A stretch of 64,000 nt of DNA from Caecitellus pseudoparvulus (taxonomy: Eukaryota; Protista; Bigyra: Bicosoecida). The notes under the pieces are model-generated. The model worked only from the letters and a program-made list of their open reading frames with translations, made no database searches and was not told the DNA's origin. Made by a program: the position numbers and the translations under genes. Positions within the stretch are counted from its first letter, which is position 1, and each line of letters begins with the position of its first letter. Positions 4,828-14,760 of the stretch are shown one piece after another. The DNA is taken from positions 1-64,000 of the forward strand of contig CBFFRQ010000020.1 in NCBI GenBank assembly GCA_965644315.1, given 5' to 3'.

Positions 4828-5191
4828 GCTGCCAAGTGGAGGTGCGGTATTTGGTTCCTCACCGCTCCGCCAGCGTTGGGCTGCCTGTTCTCCGGTTCGG
4901 AGGAAATCTGAAGGGGTGGCGATTGAGCTAGCCGCACACAATTGAAAGGGTAGTCGGATCTCCAGCTAGATGCATTGGGACCAGGCCATGTTTCGCCGTG
5001 GCTAGGCTGCAGTGTTGGAGAGCGGAGCTCGGAATTTGAGCACTCTTCGTCTTTGACACTTCACCAGCCCACGTCGGCCTGTAGACCGGGCTTCGCACGC
5101 ACACTTGCGAGTTTCCTGCTTTACTTCCCAGAAAACCGGTGAACTCTGGCCCTCGCTCGGTGAAAGGCGTGGTATGCTGCACAGCGGAGCG

Positions 5192-7351
5192 ATGTTTCTG
5201 CGGAGGTGCGCTGCGTTGGCGTTGGTGGTAGCCTGGTGCAGCGCAGCCTGGACCAACGCCGCAGGACAACAGTCTGATCCCCTGCTTGCATGCCCAAGTC
5301 AGACACACGGCTCGCCAACGGCGTGTGCTCAGTACCTGTTTCAGCAAGGCGGCGCCCTTCGCCACTCGCCGCAGGCGGCCCTGGCAGCGGTGCGGTGTGC
5401 AGCCCACCTGCACCTCGCAGGGGCTGACGAGGTCTTCCTTGCCGCCGAGCTGAATGCGGCAGCACAAGCCATGCAATTGAGTGAGGTGGACATTGCGGCG
5501 GAGCACCTGGGCAGGCTGCGGGTCGGCATCGGAGCCGCCTTGCACCGGGCCGGTGAGTGCGAAGCAGCCTCGCCACGCCACTGTGACGACTGGCCGAGCA
5601 GGGCGTTTCCTCAAGCTTCTGTGACCGCCGCGAGGGGCGTGCAGATACCCAGCACATCAAACTCACTTGTGGACGTCATGTGTGACTGGGCATGGAACTC
5701 TGCGCAGCTCGCTCTGCTCCCGGGGGCTGGGGCTGTTGCGAAGGACGCACGGTCGGCTGCGAAGTGGCTGCTTGCAGGGGCCGACTTGCAGGGGGCGGGC
5801 GGGAATCACACTTGGTGTCGAGGGATAGGGAAAGTCGAGACGGTTGCCCTTGTTCTGTGGGTGGCGCGGGAGGAGCTGCGGTTTGGGGCAGAGCGGGAGC
5901 TGCGCGTGTGGCTCGCTCCCCGCGTTCTCGCAGCCGCGACCTCTGCCTTGGCCAGCAAGCGACCGCCCCCCATCTCGTGCTTTGACGCACGACACACTGC
6001 ACTACAACCCATCACATTCCTCGCTCTCTGTCTGGCTACCGGTGCGGCGTCTGTTCCGTGGGCAGGGCAGCAATGGTGGCGACGGGCTCTGCCGCTCCAC
6101 GCCAAGTCACCCCAGCGCCTGCGCCTCTTGTGGCTGTCGCCAGACCTGCACGAGGGGCACCCGTATGGAATCCAAGTGAAAGGCATGCTAGAGGAGCTGC
6201 AGGCCCCAAGCAGTGCCATGCAGCACGTCTTGGTGTCCCCAATCGCCCTGCAGCAGCCGCTGAGGGCCGACGTGCAGTTCCTGCCCGATGGAGTCAGGGA
6301 GGCCAGTCGCATGCTGGCCCAGGCACAAGCAGACATCCTCATGGATGGCCAGGGCGCTGTGGCGGCTGCTCGTCCGGGCGTGCTGCATCGTCGAGCAGTG
6401 GCGGCAGTGCACGTTGCTGCTGTTGCATTGACCACAACGTCGGGCGTCGCCAACACACACTTCGCTTGGAGCTGTCCCTACCTCGTGCCGGCAGAGTTCG
6501 CGTGGCACTTTGCAGAGCAACAGCTGTACTTGCCTGCAGCGCCACACTTCCTGTACCCCAGTGCGCTCGTCTCCAGTGCACTGCAGGCTCCCCAACCACC
6601 GCACCAAGCCACGGCGCCTCAGCACCCTCACATTCGCCTCGTTCTCGCCCCGTTCAAACACCGAAAGCTCACCTTGCAAGCGCTGCAGCTGTGGGTGTCA
6701 AGTGTCCTGCGTTTGCCCAACACAGCCATTGCGTTCACGTGCTCCCAGGCGCATGCAAGCGCCTTGCGACGAGTTTCCGCTGCGTTGGGGCTGCACCCCC
6801 GCAGGCTGCGCTGGCTGCCGCACCTGCCCAAGGCGCGGCACATGCAGCGCCTGAAGCGCGTGGACCTGCAACTGGACCACTTCAACATGGGCCACACGAC
6901 TGCGCTGGATGCGCTGCTGTCAGGGACCCCCATCGCCACGGTGGTGGACGACCACGTAGGGCAGCGCGTGCCGGCGGCCGCCCTGGCCGCCACCCTGCCT
7001 GCTCGCCTTCGCCCTGGCGTCGTCACGCGCAGCCAGCGCAGCATGGCCCGCTCCCTTTCGGACATACTCTCGTGTCCCACCTGCCCAGTGGCCATTCGCC
7101 GGCGCCTCGCCAGTGCAGTGTCGGCGTTTTGGCGAAGCAGGCAGCTCGGCAGCGCCGCCGCCCTGAGTCTGCGTGCAGCCTCTGACGTCTCCCGCATGCT
7201 TGCCCTGGCGCCACGCAGTGACGCAACTCTTCACAAGTGCGACGTGTGGCGCAGCCAAGGCGTGGGCCAGGCGGGGGGCGCCTGCCAGGCGCCGTTTCCG
7301 CACGTGTTACCAGCCATGCACCGGCACGCAGCGCGCTTGCATTTAGAATGA
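5192..7351 (+). CDS. Glycosyltransferase family 41 (OGT/SPINDLY-like catalytic domain) with predicted N-terminal signal peptide
   Basis: MFLRRCAALALVVAWCSAAWTNA looks like a signal peptide. LRLLWLSPDLHEGHPYG matches OGT LRVGYVSSDFGNHP. Other OGT-like blocks: ADILMDGQG..ARP, TSG..PAEFAWHFAEQQLYLP, FKHRKLT...LWVSSVLRLPN, and HMQRLKRVDLQLDHFNMGHTTALDALLSGTPIAT matching OGT GHTTGMDVLWAGTPMVT. Confidence 0.8.
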   Translation: MFLRRCAALALVVAWCSAAWTNAAGQQSDPLLACPSQTHGSPTACAQYLFQQGGALRHSPQAALAAVRCAAHLHLAGADEVFLAAELNAAAQAMQLSEVDIAAEHLGRLRVGIGAALHRAGECEAASPRHCDDWPSRAFPQASVTAARGVQIPSTSNSLVDVMCDWAWNSAQLALLPGAGAVAKDARSAAKWLLAGADLQGAGGNHTWCRGIGKVETVALVLWVAREELRFGAERELRVWLAPRVLAAATSALASKRPPPISCFDARHTALQPITFLALCLATGAASVPWAGQQWWRRALPLHAKSPQRLRLLWLSPDLHEGHPYGIQVKGMLEELQAPSSAMQHVLVSPIALQQPLRADVQFLPDGVREASRMLAQAQADILMDGQGAVAAARPGVLHRRAVAAVHVAAVALTTTSGVANTHFAWSCPYLVPAEFAWHFAEQQLYLPAAPHFLYPSALVSSALQAPQPPHQATAPQHPHIRLVLAPFKHRKLTLQALQLWVSSVLRLPNTAIAFTCSQAHASALRRVSAALGLHPRRLRWLPHLPKARHMQRLKRVDLQLDHFNMGHTTALDALLSGTPIATVVDDHVGQRVPAAALAATLPARLRPGVVTRSQRSMARSLSDILSCPTCPVAIRRRLASAVSAFWRSRQLGSAAALSLRAASDVSRMLALAPRSDATLHKCDVWRSQGVGQAGGACQAPFPHVLPAMHRHAARLHLE

Positions 7352-7376
7352 GACACGGAACGTGCAAGCGTGGAGG

Positions 7377-10300
7377 TCACTGCTTGCCCTCGCTGCGGGC
7401 GCTGTCTGCGCCAGCGGCAGTCATGAACGTCCCTCGTGGACTGCCGGCCTGTACTTTCACAGGGGCCGGTGCGATGGGCGCATCAGGCTCGCTCAGGACG
7501 CCGGGCGCTGGGGCGAGCGTGCCCTGCCCCGCCTCTGCCGACAGACCCGACAGCGCAGAGGACTGAGGTCGATCAGGGGGCGGGCTGTCCGCCGTGCGCG
7601 AGGCGGCGCCGGCATCTGCCACTGTGGGCGGGGCGGGGGACGGAGCAGCCTCGCGCACGCCCACGGATGAGACTGTGCTGGCTGGGCGGCTGGCACGCAC
7701 GCTGGCGCTGGACGGCACGACACGCGCCCGGGGCTCCTCCGGCACGCCTTCACTGGCGCTGCTGTGCCCTGTCGCGGGGCGGGAGAGGCCAGAGCCCGGC
7801 TGGGGCTGGCTGGGAGAGGAGGTGCTGGCGCGAGGGGGGGTGTCAGGGCGTTCCCCGCCCCCCTCCTCGCCCTGTGCTCTGGAGGCAGCAGCGGAAGGGC
7901 CACGCCCGCCCTCCGTGGATGCCTCCCACGACGACGAGGCACTGTCCGCAGTCGGCCGCTCGCCTTCAGCGTCAGGCAGCGGCGAGTCCGGGCACGGGGC
8001 AGACGCGCCCTCGCCTGCCTCCCCAGCGGACTCCCCGCTCTGCACGGGGCTGAAACGTGCGCCGCTTCCAGCATCTGCACCATCAGCTGCCTTGCCCCCT
8101 CCCTCCCGGCTGCGTGCCGATCCCAGCGCGGCCGCCTGCGCTGCGATGGAAGCTGCCACGGCCTGGGCGGCAGCGGTGGCGGCGTCGATGTTGGCTTGCA
8201 CCGTCTGCGGCGGCGGCAGGGACGGCGTGACGGGGGAGGTGGGCAGGGGCGTCCCCTCTGCCGCCTTGCTGGGCCGCTGCCCCCGTGTGGGGGTGGGCCC
8301 ATGCTGCGGCGCCGGGGCGGGGCGCCGCGGCGCAGGCGACGCCTTACGCCCGCCACCGCCCCTTGCCCGCAGAGGACTCACGCGGCGACGGGCTGCCTTC
8401 CTGCCCTTGCCACCCCGCCGCCGCGCGGGGCTGCGTCGAGCAAATGGCGAGGCAGCCTTGGCCTCTGCGCGGTGCAGGCTGGAGGCACCCACGCGCTGGA
8501 GCGTCTTGACTACCCGCAGAGCTGACTGTGTGGCGCCGGTGAGGTTGGTGAGGGTGGCGCCAAGCTCCCGTGCATGGTCCACGAGCTCCTGCACCTGCTG
8601 TGGGCCAACCGCGGCGGAGGCGGTGTCGGGCTGCGCCAGGCCAGCGGCCATATCCCGGTAGGCCTCCAGCTTGGTCAGGGCATCCGCCACGGCAGGATGC
8701 GTTTCCCGCAGGCTCTTCACCATGGCCCGAGCCATGCGCACGCCGGTACGGGGGCGGCTGCTGGCGGGCGAGGAGCCAGTGGACCGCACTGCACTGCGGG
8801 GCGCTGCCCGCCTGCCGTGCGTCGCGCGAGGGGGGGTGGACGGAGCAGGTGTGGAGCCGGCTGGCGCCGGCGGCGTCGTGGCGCGGGGGGGGGGCTGGTC
8901 ACCCCCTCCGCCCTGGCCCCGGGGGGCGTGGCGCCGCATGTGGCCTCGCATGGCAGCCTGACCGTAGGGACTGGGCCCGGTGCGCCCCCTGCGACGGGCA
9001 GGAGACACGCGGCGGCGGCCGTCGGAGCCCTGGGCGGAGGCGGCCCGCCCACCCGGCGCGGCGATGGGGCTTAGCTTCATGCGCCCGCTGCCGTGCACTT
9101 CCATGGGCTTGCGAGGGGGGGTGGTGGGCACCGCCATGCGCATGTGCGTGGGCAGGGGGCGGCTGCCTGGGGCCGTGGGGGGGGGGAGGTGCCGCGGGCC
9201 GCCCCGCCCCCCCCCCTCCCGAAGGCTCGCCTCCACCGCCTCCAGCCCAAAGTTGTCCAGCGGCACGTGGCCTGGGGTCTTGAGGAAGCGCCTGGCCGTC
9301 TCGTGGCGCGCGGGCTGCGGCAGGGCCGCCAGACGGTGCGTGTCCAGGCCCGCAGCGGAAGGCGCTGCACCTTGCGATGGGACGGGGGCGGTGGTGGCGG
9401 CTGAGGCGTCCTTCCCTCGCCGGGCGCCTTCCGCTGGGGTAGGCAGCAGGCGCATGTGGACTCGGGGGGACCCCGTGCGACCCCCCTCGCCGGCGTGCGA
9501 CACCCCCCCCTCGGCGCCCGCCTCCGGTGCAGCCCAAGCCAGGCGACTAGCAAAGGAAGGCGCCGGGATGCGGCTGCCCCGTCCGTAGCGGGCATGTGCC
9601 AGTGAGGAGGGGGACGTCACGCCGGCCGAGCTTGGCACAGTGGCTGCTGGCCGGGCGGCAGGGCTGGTCGCCGCCGCCGACTCCGACGCGGCTGCGGGGC
9701 GCTGGGGGGTGTCGGCGCCAGAGGGTGCGGCGGCGTGGCGCTTGGGGCTGGCCCGGGCACGGCGGACAGACGGCAGGGCAGAGGCGGCAGGGGCGGCGGC
9801 GGGTGCCAGCCCCGACCCTGCAGCCGTTAAGTTGCCGCGCCGCGCCTCCTCGCGCCGGACGTGGGCCCACGCCTTGCGGTCCAGGGCCCACACCTCCACT
9901 GGGCGAGAGGGCAGCTTGCGCACTGGCGCAGGCGCAGGTGCAGGTGCAGGTGCAGGTGTAGGTGCTGCCTTGCTCTCGCCTGGCTCTTCATCGTCACTGT
10001 CTGACCAGGCGTCGCTCCCACTGTCACCACCAGCCTTCGCTTCGCCTGCAGGGACCGGCGAGCTCTCAGCACTGGTGCCGCCACTGGCGCGGGGGGCAGC
10101 TTCCTCGCTTGGCTGAGTGGGCGGGGTGGGCAGCCCGAGGGATCGGGCTGCCAGCTTGGCCAGCAGGGGGCCAGCCGTGGCGGCGGCGGGGGGGGGGGGC
10201 TTGGGCCGCCGCCCCATGCGGAGGGCGTGTGGCGTCGCCGCCTCTGACAGCTGCACGCCCCGCCACACGAAGACGAGGGTGTCCTTGCTCACCCGCAGCG

Positions 10301-11433
10301 CCTTGGCTGCGGGGCCATGCAGGGTCAGCCCTAGCGGCGTGCCGGCGTCCACCCGCAGTCGCAGGGTCTTGGCGGTGACCAGGCCACGCAGGTGCCTCAC
10401 ACGCAGGGTCACTTGGGGGGGGGTCTCGTTGGCCCCTCGCGCCTCCTTCACAGCCAACCGGGCGGCGGCCAGGGCCCCCCCCTGCCACCCCGCCGGCAAC
10501 CACTCCTGCAGCGTGTCCAGCGCCGCCTTGCCGTCTGTGCTGCCTTGCACCGCCACGTGCTCGGCCAGGGGCGGCGGGCTGCCGGAACGCACGGAGCCAG
10601 CCAGCAGCTGCCCAGCGCGGTTGAACAGCTCCCGGGCCAGGGCGCCGAGGAGGAGGGAGGCGTCGTTGCTAAGGGAGTATGCCGGGTGCACGCAGCGCAG
10701 GAGGGCAGACGCCTCCACGTCCGTCACCGCGTCGTCCTTATGCCGCGCCCACCGCGCCGCCGTCGCGTCGTGGCCGGCAGCCAGACTGGCCTCCTCCTCA
10801 GCCGAGGGCGGGTGTCCTGCGGAGGTGCTTTGGGGCGTGCCCTCAGGCACCTTGCCCACGATGCGCTGGCGAGCAGAGCGTGCTGGCGCGTCGGCTGCGT
10901 CCGCCTGGGCGCGCTCCTGCGCCAGGGCCACTGTCGCGCTGTCCGCAAAGTTGCCCACAAGGTCGCACAGCGACTCCTCGCCCTCCCTGTCCATGAGCTC
11001 GCACCACTGCTCGTTGTCCAGCATGGCCAGCAGGATGTAGCCGCCTGTGAGCATCTCCGGCTTGCGGTGCCCCCGCATGCGGGCCTTGACGCCCTCGTCC
11101 CCCATCAGCTCCAGTGCAGCGAGGAGCGTGCGGCGAAACGCCCACTCGATGGCCCCTGTCACGGCGACAGCTGCGTCATCCTGCGTTTCGCGCGGAGGAA
11201 GGGGCGCCAGTGAGGTGCAGCACATGCAAGGTAATGCAAAGAATGCAGCCCCCGCCCTGCAGCGTGCACATCCGGCCATGGGCCGGGCGCTGCTGCCATG
11301 CTGTGCCAGCGGTTGCCCGCTGCGAAACGCCGCTGCGACTCACAGACACTGCAGGCCACTCCAGCCGCGACAGGTGGGCCGCCCGGACGCCCGAAGGGCG
11401 AATGACCAGATGATGGCTCACACTTGCATCCAT
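7377..11433 (-). CDS. Tandem H2A-like + H2B-like histone-fold protein with SUMO/ubiquitin-like domain and long basic low-complexity tail (~1297 aa, 2 exons)
   Basis: Exon 1 11344-11433, phase-0 GTGAGT...CAG intron 11181-11343, exon 2 7377-11180. H2A-like: HHLVIRPSGVRAAHLSRLEWPAVSDDAAVAVTGAIEWAFRRTLLAA...LTGGYILLAMLDNEQWCELM. H2B-like: LLRCVHPAYSLSNDASLLLGALARELFNR...LQEWLPAGWQGGALAAARLAVKEAR. SUMO-like: VTLRVRH...LRLRVDAGTPL...LVFVWRGVQLSEAATPHALRM. Confidence 0.72.
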
Positions 11434-11926
11434 TATCTGGCAGCAGTGGTCCGAGCCAGCCTCCCTGCTGAGCAGGGGACTGACTGCAGTGTGCCTGGCG
11501 CTGGCTGCTGTCGCTGCTGCCGTGTGCGGCCTCACAGGCGCAACGCAGCCCAGTCAAGTTTCAGCACGAGCAGGCAGCGCAAGATCAGGCTGCTGCCAAG
11601 CAGATTCGCACATCCCTGCGGCGCGCAGCTGCTGCGAGTTCGTGTTTTCTTCCAGTCCACAAAGTGCATCACAAGCAGCGTCCAGTGGCATACGCAGTTC
11701 AGCGCGAGAAAAGAGCAACCTTGCAAGGGCATCACTACATTTCAAAAGAGGCACCACCAACAAATGCCGTTACCTACCCTCCCTTGCCCTTGCTGTCTTG
11801 CCAGCCGCTGTGCGGCTCACAGCAAGTTTGCTTCACCTTCGCTGCAGCCGCCTCCAAGTCCCTCAACCTCTGCGCTGTCTCGAGGTCGACTTTCTCCTCA
11901 CTCCAAGCGGTCCACACAGTGCCGAC

Positions 11927-14760
11927 ATGGCAGCACAAGATGAAACGCCTGTGCCGCTCCTGCAGCGACTGAGAACGTGGACAGAGCAGAGTCCAGACAA
12001 GGTGCGGTGTCGAAACGCCTGCGAAACGCGACACGCCCATCCTACCCTGCTCCCCCCCTCCTGCAGACTGTTTTCTCTTACCTCGACGGAAAGGGGGATG
12101 TTTCAGCCAGTTATACCTTTGCGCAGCTGTCAAGTGCATCGGAGCGCCTCGCAAGGCACTTGCTCTCTGACGAAAAGTGAGTGGCTCTGCTGCCCACAGC
12201 TGCCCCTGCTCGCGCCATGCCAACGCGCTCCCCCCCCACGTCTTCAGACTGAACCTGAGCCAGGGCGACCGGGTCTTGCTTGTGTTCATTCCCAGCATTG
12301 ACTTCATCGTCACATTCATCGCCTGCCTTCGGGCTGGGCTCATTGCCGTGCCAGTGCGTGGCTTGCGGGCTGCACCCCCCAGACCCCCACAGCCGCATGC
12401 CGCACACCCCACCTCCGCCCCCACAGGTGTACCCGCCAGACCCGCGAAACCTATCCAAGAACCTGCACAGCTTCGTGAGCATCCAGGCCAGCTGTGGCGC
12501 AGCCGTGGCCCTCACGCACTCAGTGTACCAGACAGCGCGCAAGGTGGCTGATGTGGCGGAGGCGGCCGCCTCTCTCTTCCGCTCACGGGGCGTGGCCCTG
12601 GCATGGCCAGACCTGACGTGGCTGGCAGTGGACTCCTTCATCCAGCCGAGCGCGGGGCCGGGGGAGGGCGCCCCCCTGCCGCCCGTGCAGGCTTCCGCCG
12701 TGGCCTTCCTGCAGTACACCTCCGGCTCCACTTCAGAGCCCAAAGGCGTCACCATCACCCACGCAAACCTGGCCCACAACCTCACCGTCATCACGCGCAG
12801 CCTCGCCGCCTCGCCAGACACCGTCGTCGTGTCCTGGTTGCCGCAGTACCACGACATGGGCCTCATCGGCGCGTACTTGGGCACGCTGTACTGCGGCGGG
12901 GCAGGTTTCTACTTCTCACCGCTGGACTTCATCAAGTCGCCGCCGCTGTGGATGCAGGCCGCTGGCAGGTACGGCGCGACGCACCTGCAGGGCCCTAACT
13001 TCGCCTACAAGCTCACCGCTCGCAAGTGGCGGGAGCGGGGCTTGGACGCCAGCACCCCCCTGGGCAAGCTGGACCTGTCCTCTGTCCGGCACATCTTCAA
13101 CGCAGCAGAGCCAGTCACCAGTGCCGCCATGGACACGTTTCTCGCCGCCTTCGTGCGTTACGGCCTGTCTCCTGATGCGTTTCACCCGGGCTTCGGCATG
13201 GCGGAGAGCACCGTGTACTGCACGGACGGCGGCAGGGCGCGCCTGCGCGTGAGCAAGGCGGAGCTGGAGGTGAACGGCCAGGTGGTGCCGTGGGCGACGT
13301 GGGAGGGGGCAGGTGCCGATGAGGTGCGGGCAGCCGCGGCGCAGGGCGACGGTGCGCCGGGCAGTTTGAACCTGGGCAAGTGGGTCGTGACGCCGCAGTG
13401 CCCGGGAGGGACGCTGCCCCGCTCAGGCTGGTCTGAGGTCATTGGGTGCGGGGCCGTGGACAAGAACCCAGACGTGCACGTGGCCATCGCAGCAGTGGAT
13501 CTGACCGCCCCTGCCGGTGATCCGGGTCCCTCAGGGGACCACTCCTTCCCCCCCTGCCCTCCCGGAACAGTGGGCGAGCTGTGGGTCCGCTCAGCCTCTG
13601 TGGCGTCCGGCGGGTATTGGGGCGAGCCGGAGAAGACCCGAGCTGCCTTCAGCGGGCGCCTGGTGCGTGACGACTCCGTGGTGGAGCCGTGGCTGCGTTC
13701 TGGCGATTTGGCGTTCATCTGGGAGGGGGAGGTGTTCGTCGTGGGACGGCAGAAGGACATGGTCATCGTGAGGGGACGCAACCACTTCCCCCAGGACATC
13801 GAAGGGTCCGCCGAGGCGGCGGCACCCACCGCCCTGCGACCTGGCTGCTCTGCAGCATTTGCCGCGCCCTTGCGCCAGTCCCTCCGCGCGGCCCAGGCAC
13901 TGGGCGTTCAGCCCGCCAGCGCTCCTGCGCCAGGGCAGGCTCATGCTGAGGCCCATGGAGAAGACGAAGAAGGTCTTGTGGTGGTGGTGGAGCACCGCGA
14001 GGCGGGGGTGGGCGCCGGGGCGGCCAAGGCGGCGGCAGCCACCGTGGCAGCACAGGTCGCGCGCGACCACGGCATCCGCCCCAGCCTGGTGCTGGTGCTG
14101 AAGCCCCACACGGCAGTGAAGACCACCAGCGGCAAGATCGCCCGCAAGTGGAACGCCAAGGCCCTCGCTGCGCTGGCGGGCGAGGGGGGGGGGCAGGCGG
14201 CTGACACGGCGCCAGCGGCGGGGGAGGGGAAAGCGGAGGGTGGGCCCACTCCCCGCAGGGAGCCCAACCCATGGGCCCAGGAGAAGGGCGCCGTCTTGGC
14301 CGCTCTGCTGCCTGAGGAGGAGGACAAGGGCCCTGGTGCAGGGGGGGCAGGGGGGGGGGCACCCCGTGGACCCCGCCACGGGGACCTGAGCGGCAGCGCT
14401 CTGGCGGAGGCACTGCAGCGGGATGTGGGCGCCATGGTGGGCGCCCCTGCCGCCGCCATGGACACCACCAAGCCCCTCTTTGCCCTGGGCCTGGACAGCA
14501 TCGCCCTGACGCAGCTGGGCGGCAGTCTCGCCCACACGTACGGCCTCCGTGTGTCAGACGAGCAAGTGTTCGCAGAGGGCTGCTCCATCGTGTGGCTCGT
14601 GAACAACGCTGAAGCCCTGAGGCAGCAGGTGCCATCAGACCCGACAACGCACATCCCTGCCCCGGCTGCTGGGGAGGGCGGCACTGAAATTGTAGTGGGA
14701 GCCAAAGCAGAGGCGGGGTGTTGCCAGAAGTACGCGCCTTGCTGTGTGTGCTGCTACTGA
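11927..14760 (+). CDS. Fatty acyl-AMP ligase (FAAL) fused to an acyl carrier domain, Cys-rich C-terminus; 4 exons
   Basis: Exons 11927-12001, 12067-12176, 12248-12353 and 12427-14760, all GT-AG. Motifs RAGLIAVPVYPP, AFLQYTSGSTSEPKGV, SWLPQYHDMGLIG, FGMAEST, WLRSGDLAF, GRQKDMVIVRGRNHFPQDIE and KTTSGKIAR. The phosphopantetheine site is LGLDSIAL. Confidence 0.9.

Follow-up and report, generated by a model that had tools for sequence, protein, structure and literature searches.

A gene family of a bicosoecid and oomycetes joins H2A-like and H2B-like histone folds and a SUMO-like domain in one chain

The 64,000-nucleotide stretch of Caecitellus pseudoparvulus DNA analyzed here (contig CBFFRQ010000020.1, positions 1 to 64,000; hereafter the window) carries on its minus strand, at 11433-7377, one two-exon gene for a protein of ~1297 amino acids (aa). 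Its N-terminal part almost certainly consists of an H2A-like fold, a linker, an H2B-like fold, a SUMO-like domain and a basic helix, in this order. The protein belongs to a conserved, unannotated family which includes oomycete proteins, and the architecture is conserved in independent assemblies. An earlier note on this DNA, made from the letters alone, had proposed a single-chain H2A-H2B doublet fused to a SUMO- or ubiquitin-like domain (UBL).

A conserved and unannotated family

An exhaustive HMMER search with exon-2 residues 1-343 as query matched 32 proteins: P0001 (an unspliced model from the same species), P0002 (53% identity) and ~30 distant relatives at 23-35% identity. Homology searches used exon 1 or exon 2 separately, and the phyletic range is known from this one single-sequence exhaustive search. 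In ~20 relatives the conserved blocks follow each other in the same order: the H2A-like segment, an 'F-L-D..T' helix, the block 'W.RR.DD.vTdVD..LLK.VHPaytLS.DA..L.AL.REL', an 'lPG' helix pair, the beta-grasp and 'WW..RR.EARRG.L'. Hypothetical proteins from Phytophthora ramorum, P. kernoviae and Lagenidium giganteum make up the named members. In the C. pseudoparvulus genome the gene is single-copy, and the family profile, run over the whole genome, matched the window gene first, followed by the SUMO gene and, after it, the canonical H2A genes.

Pfam returned no significant domain for the pieces of the window protein (and nothing in its tail), and no significant histone domain for ten relatives. 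Word-indexed homologue searches added little, their candidate lists being filled by low-complexity words, and the ESM Atlas, searched by features and by shape, gave no cluster with the whole architecture. In a viral structure library doublets and UBLs were present separately and never together, and no protein matched the whole module (template-modelling score (TM) by query <=0.42); since that library never combines the two, a viral origin was dropped.

Two histone folds and a SUMO-like domain

The segments of the protein are given below with their coordinates in the window, their exon-2 residues and the evidence for each (pLDDT, predicted local distance difference test). The coordinates given in the earlier note agree with the secondary structure that AlphaFold2 predicts for exon 2.

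10989-11177, minus strand: H2A-like alpha2, L2 (lengthened and basic), alpha3 and alphaC, residues 2-64 (AlphaFold2, profiles, hhalign)
10722-10988, minus strand: acidic helical linker, residues 65-153 (AlphaFold2, motifs, isoelectric point (pI))
10440-10721, minus strand: H2B-like alpha1-L1-alpha2-L2-alpha3-alphaC, residues 154-247 (AlphaFold2, profile A6, hhalign)
10203-10415, minus strand: SUMO-like strands 1-4 and helix, residues 256-326 (AlphaFold2, structure search, profile)
9900-10202, minus strand: disordered Pro/Ala/acidic insert of ~100 aa with a PAPAPAPAP repeat, residues 327-427 (pLDDT <50 at 357-407)
9879-9899, minus strand: last SUMO-like strand, VEVWALD region, residues 428-434 (AlphaFold2 strand, alignments)
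9834-9878, minus strand: basic helix W..RR.EARRG without di-glycine, residues 435-449 (AlphaFold2 helix 435-447)
7380-9833, minus strand: low-complexity, basic tail in which short blocks are conserved and the C-terminal region is helical (RNA coverage, blocks of P0002)

Profile A5, built from the H2A-like part without the window sequence, found H2A in 60/60 of its best PDB matches (46-48 bits, E about 1e-11, H2A residues 25-99), and hhalign against the genome's own H2A gave probability 94 and E 1.2e-7, with 42% identity over 60 columns. The AlphaFold2 model places helices at 2-26, 46-55 and 57-64 of this part (pLDDT 85-97). By homology it belongs to histone H2A, with the fold alpha1-L1-alpha2-L2-alpha3 plus alphaC and an H2A-specific signal.

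For the H2B-like part, 60/60 best PDB matches of profile A6 were H2B (~30 bits, E about 1e-6, H2B residues 40-120), the match to a tandem H2B chain reached E 8e-14, and hhalign against the genome's own H2B gave probability 92 and E 7e-7 over 81 columns from alpha1 to alphaC. Modelled helices lie at 154-164, 172-198, 217-227 and 230-247 (10721-10440). With alpha1-alpha3, a long alphaC and the motif around 'VHP', this part belongs by homology to histone H2B; the complete H2B-like fold including alphaC, as read by the earlier note, was thus recovered by profile, hhalign and model. The family profile A1 in turn matched single-chain H2B-H2A constructs in the PDB at E 1.1e-15, via H2A (profile positions 5-90) and H2B (172-256), and H2A-only chains at E about 3e-8. 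Control runs of hhalign against the genome's own H3 and H4 gave probabilities of 0.6 and 0.2. Profile E-values of this size together with negative H3 and H4 controls indicate that the resemblance is more than chance.

Between the two folds, the ~90-aa linker which the earlier note had proposed was located at residues 65-153 (10722-10988). It carries the motifs F-x-D and W-x-R-[RH]-x-D-D; D80 is nearly invariant and W144 (10749-10751) invariant, and its four modelled helices (69-78, 81-95, 102-109 and 127-143) occupy the place of the H2A docking domain.

When the single sequence was compared with the PDB via phmmer, nothing was found beyond a match to transcription activator-like (TAL) effectors. 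The stretch 'HVAVQGSTDGKAALDTLQEWLP' at 10497-10562 (minus strand), which lies within the L2 insertion of the H2B-like fold where model confidence is low, is similar to a single TAL-effector repeat; this likeness is spurious, as the E-value of 4e-5 sums many repeats and each stretch is insignificant alone.

Downstream of the H2B-like fold, A1 matched SUMO chains in the PDB at E 1.5e-8 to 3.8e-14 (the latter for SUMO2) over profile positions 259-334, and the UBL of the relative P0050 passed Pfam Rad60-SLD (PF11976) with 37.3 bits against a cut-off of 23.8. The domain thus belongs to SUMO / Rad60-SLD, the window sequence alone being below every Pfam threshold. Foldseek matched SUMO1/2 at TM 0.72-0.78, and the window model superposed on SUMO chains with Z 11.3-11.6 and a root-mean-square deviation (rmsd) of 1.1-1.4 Å; the alignments span residues 255-435, across the insert. 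Since they reach the strand at 428-434 beyond the insert, RPVEVWAL is the displaced last strand, as the earlier note had suspected; in alignment A1 the same peptide falls on the final UBL strand in every relative. The insert itself is lineage-specific: it is missing in most relatives and present in P0002, P0026 and P0030.

The domain is non-cleavable: unlike a conjugatable SUMO it has no GG in any member, the W..RR.EARRG helix following immediately on the last strand. A single SUMO-like domain (SLD) is followed by the ~800-aa tail, unlike the tandem C-terminal pair of the RENi family (Rad60/Esc2/NIP45). In position, the UBL starts ~9 residues past the residue aligned with the ubiquitylated lysine of H2B, which bears out its placement beside that site in the earlier note; judging from the models, it appears to sit just after the H2B-like alphaC.

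The helix that follows, 'WW..RR.EARRG.L[ST]S', is near-invariant and the most conserved element of the family, with R, A, R, R, G and L invariant in alignment A2. Its sole H4 match pairs 'ARRG' with H4 'LARRGG' (E 0.27). It may loosely recall arginine-anchor or HMGN-type motifs. The tail shares with P0002 short blocks such as RYxxGSRIPAP, HMRLLPTPxEG, RRFLKTPxHVPL, DPSPYGQAA and a C-terminal GTFMTA; the motif R-L-[ILV]-x-[TS]-P-x-x-G is family-wide, and SPxR-type sites also occur. The tail is covered by RNA contigs, and most strain differences in the gene are synonymous.

The canonical histones used for comparison include a cluster at L014 (G000:C80:128800-132200) in the order H2B, H2A, H4, H3. 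There H2A starts with SGKGKGGR and H2B with AKTP; both fit the criteria for stramenopile histones, for which a brown-alga genomics paper uses such H2A/H2B N-termini.

Gene structure and transcription

The open reading frame (ORF) listing of the window contains an open frame 11279->7377 on the minus strand, in DNA of 70-76% G+C with long low-complexity stretches. The earlier note had added to it a 90-nucleotide (nt) first exon which the ORF track misses. Public contigs were mapped onto 7000-12000: X1, X2 and X3 are RNA contigs (X1 and X3 being two metatranscriptome studies), and X10 is a genomic run of a close relative. The gene model is as follows.

11434-11527, minus strand: transcribed 5' leader, minimum extent (record 29 of RNA contig X3 covers 11377-11527)
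11344-11433, minus strand: coding exon 1 of 30 codons, which contributes alpha1/L1 to the H2A-like fold (translation, splice joint, exon on contig L015)
11181-11343, minus strand: phase-0 GT..AG intron of 163 nt (skipped in X1 and X3 contigs, unspliced in X10)
7377-11180, minus strand: coding exon 2, 1267 codons plus stop codon at 7377-7379 (open frame, RNA contigs)

The joint 11179->11343 (cut +1, 163 nt skipped) was found in both X1 (side 27) and X3 (side 43). It fits equally one base rightward, so that the interval taken out is precisely 11181-11343, a GT..AG intron on the minus strand (donor GTGAGT, acceptor CAG), after which exon 2 reads on from exon 1 in phase 0; X10 crosses the same interval unspliced. 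Splicing in contigs from two metatranscriptome studies therefore occurs exactly where the earlier note had placed its intron. The RNA contigs reach upstream to 11527 and tile exon 2 without further joints. Moreover, single contigs bridge the H2A-like and H2B-like parts (X2, 10436-11155) and the H2B-like part and UBL (X1, 10208-10660), which supports one transcript rather than separate genes. An in-frame TGA lies upstream of the ATG at 11433 (11554-11556), with no in-frame ATG between. A short upstream ORF (ATG TGC GAA ... TGA) at ~11556-11613 on the minus strand possibly belongs to the 5' leader; the RNA contigs end at 11527.

The same exon arrangement is found in the orthologue P0002 on contig L015, where a 30-codon exon lies upstream of the annotated start and is followed by a GT..AG intron of 144 nt with a phase-0 junction; exon 2 begins there at the same codon as in the window gene, and the exon-1 peptides share 14/29 identities (E 3e-9). 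The missed first exon is borne out by this conserved exon and by the spliced RNA contigs. Between natural populations, synonymous third-position changes account for 24/33 listed single-base differences (P 4e-6), and in the N-terminal module 7/8 listed differences are synonymous. The splice joint, the conserved exon 1 and the mostly synonymous variation together indicate a real two-exon gene under purifying selection.

The deposited same-species model P0001 (478 aa) takes its start ATG from inside the intron (11279) and loses the frame at ~10150, inside the acidic/Pro insert; either mis-annotation or a strain indel accounts for it. X10 differs from the window by ~70 substitutions over 9400-12000, with differences that include positions 9726, 11532 and 11678, among them two 6-nt insertions of in-frame size (GCGGCG after 9726 and CGTGCC after 11678).

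Predicted structure and intramolecular pairing

AlphaFold2 was run on exon-2 residues 1-460 of the window protein, with alignment A1, and on residues 1-372 of P0050, whose N-terminus is complete; the models reached pLDDT 79 with a predicted template-modelling score (pTM) of 0.74, and pLDDT 86 with pTM 0.86, respectively. In an exhaustive structural comparison the P0050 model matched the single-chain H2A-H2B construct 8uqe_B (Z 13.4, rmsd 3.2 Å, 168 residues), the Melbournevirus doublet (Z 12.3, 176 aa), the Methanopyrus kandleri doublet (Z 11.6), the SOS histone domain (Z 11.4) and Spt3 (Z 10.4). SUMO-2 was matched over 73/73 residues (Z 13.1, rmsd 1.2 Å, 25% identity), with ubiquitin lower (Z about 10.5), and the window model matched single-chain H2A-H2B at Z 11.1 over 147 residues. 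Both targets that the earlier note had named for superposition, the H2A-H2B dimer and SUMO, were thus matched at Z 11-13.

With high confidence (pTM 0.86 and 0.74) an intramolecular histone-fold pair is predicted, and the models superpose on single-chain H2A-H2B and on viral and archaeal doublets (Z 11-13, 147-176 aa). The two folds are therefore predicted to pair with each other within one chain, as a ready-made H2A-H2B-like dimer, in agreement with the pre-assembled pseudo-dimer of the earlier note. As the dimer is pseudo-symmetric, structural alignment is blind to the order of its halves; the order, H2A first and H2B second, is given by the sequence profiles.

Charge and histone-specific residues

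The pI of each segment is given for the window protein, as the family median and, for the histone folds, for the canonical fold.

H2A-like fold: window 5.0; family median 6.9; canonical fold 10.3
H2B-like fold: window 5.5; family median 5.7; canonical fold 9.7
Linker: window 4.8; family median 4.8
UBL: window 10.0; family median 9.7
Post-UBL helix: window 11.8; family median 11.6

Canonical residues were mapped onto the family via hmmalign with 24 relatives. Among the DNA contacts, H2A R42 and R77 have no conserved equivalents and the basic residues of H2B L1/L2 are not kept, the L2 Arg equivalent being Glu in 10/24 relatives. Of the acidic patch, the H2B glutamates (E105 and E113 equivalents) are lost, while those of H2A (E61, E64 and D90-E92) survive in part among the relatives and are mostly lost in the window protein; the Glu equivalent to H2A E56 is invariant. 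The H2B K120 equivalent is Arg in 16/24 relatives and Glu in the window protein, and basic N-terminal tails are absent.

The H2A-like part thus departs from a functional nucleosomal H2A in pI, DNA-contact Arg and docking domain, and the H2B-like part from a functional nucleosomal H2B in its L2 Arg, E105/E113 and K120 equivalents and its pI of 5.5. With its acidic or neutral folds, and lacking most DNA-contact residues, the docking domain and the basic tails, the protein is probably not a nucleosomal histone. The novel histone variant entertained by the earlier note is accordingly disfavoured by charge and by the loss of DNA-contact residues.

Comparison with known histone pairs and SUMO-like domains

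Known intramolecular histone pairs are either basic DNA packagers (viral and archaeal doublets) or proteins such as SOS, Spt3 and TAFs without H2A- or H2B-specific sequence. The giant-virus doublets (Marseilleviridae H2B-H2A; Melbournevirus 7n8n) likewise pair two core-histone-derived folds in one chain, and doublets of BFVD match at TM up to 0.79. In the window protein, however, the order is reversed (H2A then H2B, with a ~90-aa helical linker), the folds are acidic or neutral and without DNA-contact residues, a SUMO-like domain and ~800-aa tail are added, and the gene is cellular and has an intron; order, charge and a cellular spliced gene thus separate it from Marseilleviridae-type doublets. 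Engineered single-chain H2A-H2B proteins (8uqe_B, 7ybf_A and others) are its best sequence-profile and structural matches, but they are artificial fusions of canonical basic histones, whereas the window protein is natural and diverged, with the halves in reverse order. SOS1, the Spt3/TAF double histone folds and M. kandleri HMk also form an intramolecular histone-fold pair (Z 10.4-11.6), which SOS and Spt3 use for non-nucleosomal roles; these proteins have neither an H2A- or H2B-specific sequence signal nor a UBL, whereas the halves of the window protein are recognizably H2A and H2B.

The beta-grasp is closest to SUMO and, like the SLDs of Rad60/Esc2/NIP45 (PF11976), is built in and without di-glycine; it differs from the latter as one SLD instead of a tandem pair, with a ~100-aa loop in this species, and in its fusion to histone folds. 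SUMO-like domains are known from Rad60/Esc2/NIP45 and are not known on histone folds. Two further systems are comparable. H2B is mono-ubiquitylated on alphaC (human K120, yeast K123), which likewise brings a ubiquitin-fold domain near the end of H2B alphaC, but here the link is a backbone fusion and not an isopeptide bond, the domain is SUMO-like, and the aligned residue is Arg or (in the window protein) Glu as described above. MacroH2A likewise combines a histone fold with an extra globular domain.

According to a review, fused histones are as a rule missing from present-day eukaryotes (PMC10919886), and in a wide survey of chromatin, viruses alone are listed with histone doublets (10.1101/2021.11.30.470311); across surveys, doublets are recorded for viruses and archaea and for no other group. 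Keyword and accession searches of the open-access literature returned no description of the family or the architecture, so that 'undescribed' is provisional. The earlier note had not recognized the architecture in any described protein; this holds for the literature searched, but the architecture is not unique to this genome, since oomycetes share it. Provisionally, then, known kinds of domain are combined in a new architecture which is conserved in a lineage.

The interest of the family is that cellular genes join a recognizable H2A and H2B, in the opposite order to viral doublets, with a SUMO-like domain. Core histones have here been put to use in a novel module, apparently outside nucleosomes, and the family is a natural experiment on the capacities of an H2A-H2B dimer that no longer has to wrap DNA. 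For "hypothetical proteins" of oomycete plant pathogens and marine protists this is the first domain annotation. Because the histone parts escape standard Pfam annotation, comparable cases may have gone unnoticed in other organisms.

Proposed function and alternative explanations

We favour, as a reading that is rather probable taken as a whole, a single-gene module acting as a non-nucleosomal chromatin adaptor; for the chromatin-associated adaptor function by itself the chances are close to even, if slightly below. The first ~480 residues form one compact module (H2A fold, ~90-residue linker, H2B fold, SUMO beta-grasp and basic helix), in which a rigid, self-paired H2A-H2B-like dimer would have given up DNA wrapping and become a platform for protein interactions, with a SUMO-like domain lacking di-glycine permanently attached ~9 residues past the end of the H2B alphaC. 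Such a module would no longer wrap DNA or enter nucleosomes. It may offer H2A-H2B-type and SUMO-type surfaces, for example to proteins containing SUMO-interacting motifs, to Ubc9-type enzymes and to H2A-H2B-binding factors, while the basic helix and the ~800-aa basic tail would attach it to DNA or chromatin. The elements under the strongest conservation, W144, the Arg of the H2B-like alpha2, the E56-like Glu and the RR.EARRG helix, may mark functional surfaces or the structural core.

Several points weigh against this interpretation or parts of it: i) the pairing and the position of the SUMO-like domain are predicted by AlphaFold models from 24-27 sequences; ii) a Z of ~13 is reached fairly easily by helical folds in structural search; iii) the window protein was modelled from exon 2 only, and its alpha1 lies in exon 1, outside the model; iv) exon 1 compared with the alpha1 segment alone is not significant (hhalign E 0.025, probability 1.9%), although it aligns positionally with the 'L.FP...lR..L' alpha1 segment of the relatives; v) the E56-type Glu is invariant and a K74-like Lys common, so some histone-type contacts may survive; vi) the very basic tail would suit a DNA-packaging role. 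Regarding iv), the alpha1 match is right in register but not significant, and it is therefore the conserved L015 exon that carries the argument; the N-terminal H2A-like fold completed by a spliced exon 1, as the earlier note had it, stands on profiles, hhalign and model, with the alpha1 segment alone remaining weak.

Points v) and vi) would also fit a true nucleosomal variant that replaces the H2A-H2B dimer and whose own chain supplies a SUMO-like mark together with a tail resembling H1 or protamine (SPxR-rich as well as basic), and descent from H2A and H2B is clear. We nevertheless consider such a variant very unlikely, because the folds are acidic or neutral, the R42, R77 and H2B L1/L2 basic equivalents are lost, both docking domain and N-terminal tails are missing, a ~90-aa linker and a bulky SLD would need to be accommodated, and the gene is single-copy and outside the histone clusters. 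A mimic of the modified H2A-H2B dimer, bearing a ubiquitin-type mark at the H2B alphaC and serving as decoy or ligand for readers, chaperones or importers, is a close variant of the adaptor reading and overlaps it, but is unlikely in itself. The start of the UBL ~9 residues after the K120-aligned position, the predicted rigidity of the module (pTM 0.86) and the acidic linker after the H2A alphaC, where chaperone-type acidic segments would lie, all suit a mimic; the domain, though, is SUMO-like and not ubiquitin-like, and most acidic-patch and surface residues used by readers are not conserved.

Proteins that combine a UBL with IQ, such as IQUB, occur in flagella, and an IQ motif is present in one subgroup of the family only (P0003/P0016/P0049/P0050). 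This, the SOS match at Z 11.4 and the non-basic folds would be compatible with a scaffold outside chromatin, whose histone-fold pair binds protein or lipid in the cytoplasm (cf. SOS1) or in flagella; yet the window protein and the oomycete members have no IQ motif, the axonemal UBL match is weaker than that to SUMO, and the basic helix and tail fit nucleic-acid binding better, so that we regard it as distinctly improbable. Virtually no weight is left for an artefact, be it accidental similarity in an ORF of high GC content and low complexity, or neighbouring genes wrongly joined. The ORF is indeed 75% G+C with long low-complexity stretches, and Pfam finds nothing in the single sequence; however, the profile E-values come with negative H3/H4 controls, the architecture is kept in independent assemblies including annotated oomycete genomes, RNA contigs and splicing support one transcript, strain variation is mostly synonymous and the models are confident, and these together refute it.

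Beyond the adaptor reading, a bolder proposal, which we hold to be unlikely, is a cell-encoded 'pre-modified histone dimer': a single-chain H2A-H2B with a hard-wired SUMO-fold mark at the H2B alphaC site, lineage-wide. If true, machinery acting on modified H2A-H2B dimers would recognize the protein, or the protein would compete for that machinery; alternatively, it would be deposited at special chromatin via its H1-like tail. It would then be the first case of fused core histones to be described from a cellular eukaryote.

Neighbouring genes

On L015 the neighbours of the orthologue are an MMR_HSR1 GTPase and RNR alpha, with no synteny conserved relative to the window. In the window the gene is flanked by an OGT-like gene (5105-7351) and a FAAL-ACP gene (12280-14760); the OGT-like gene is convergent, and its end lies 26 bp from the stop codon of the histone-fusion gene.

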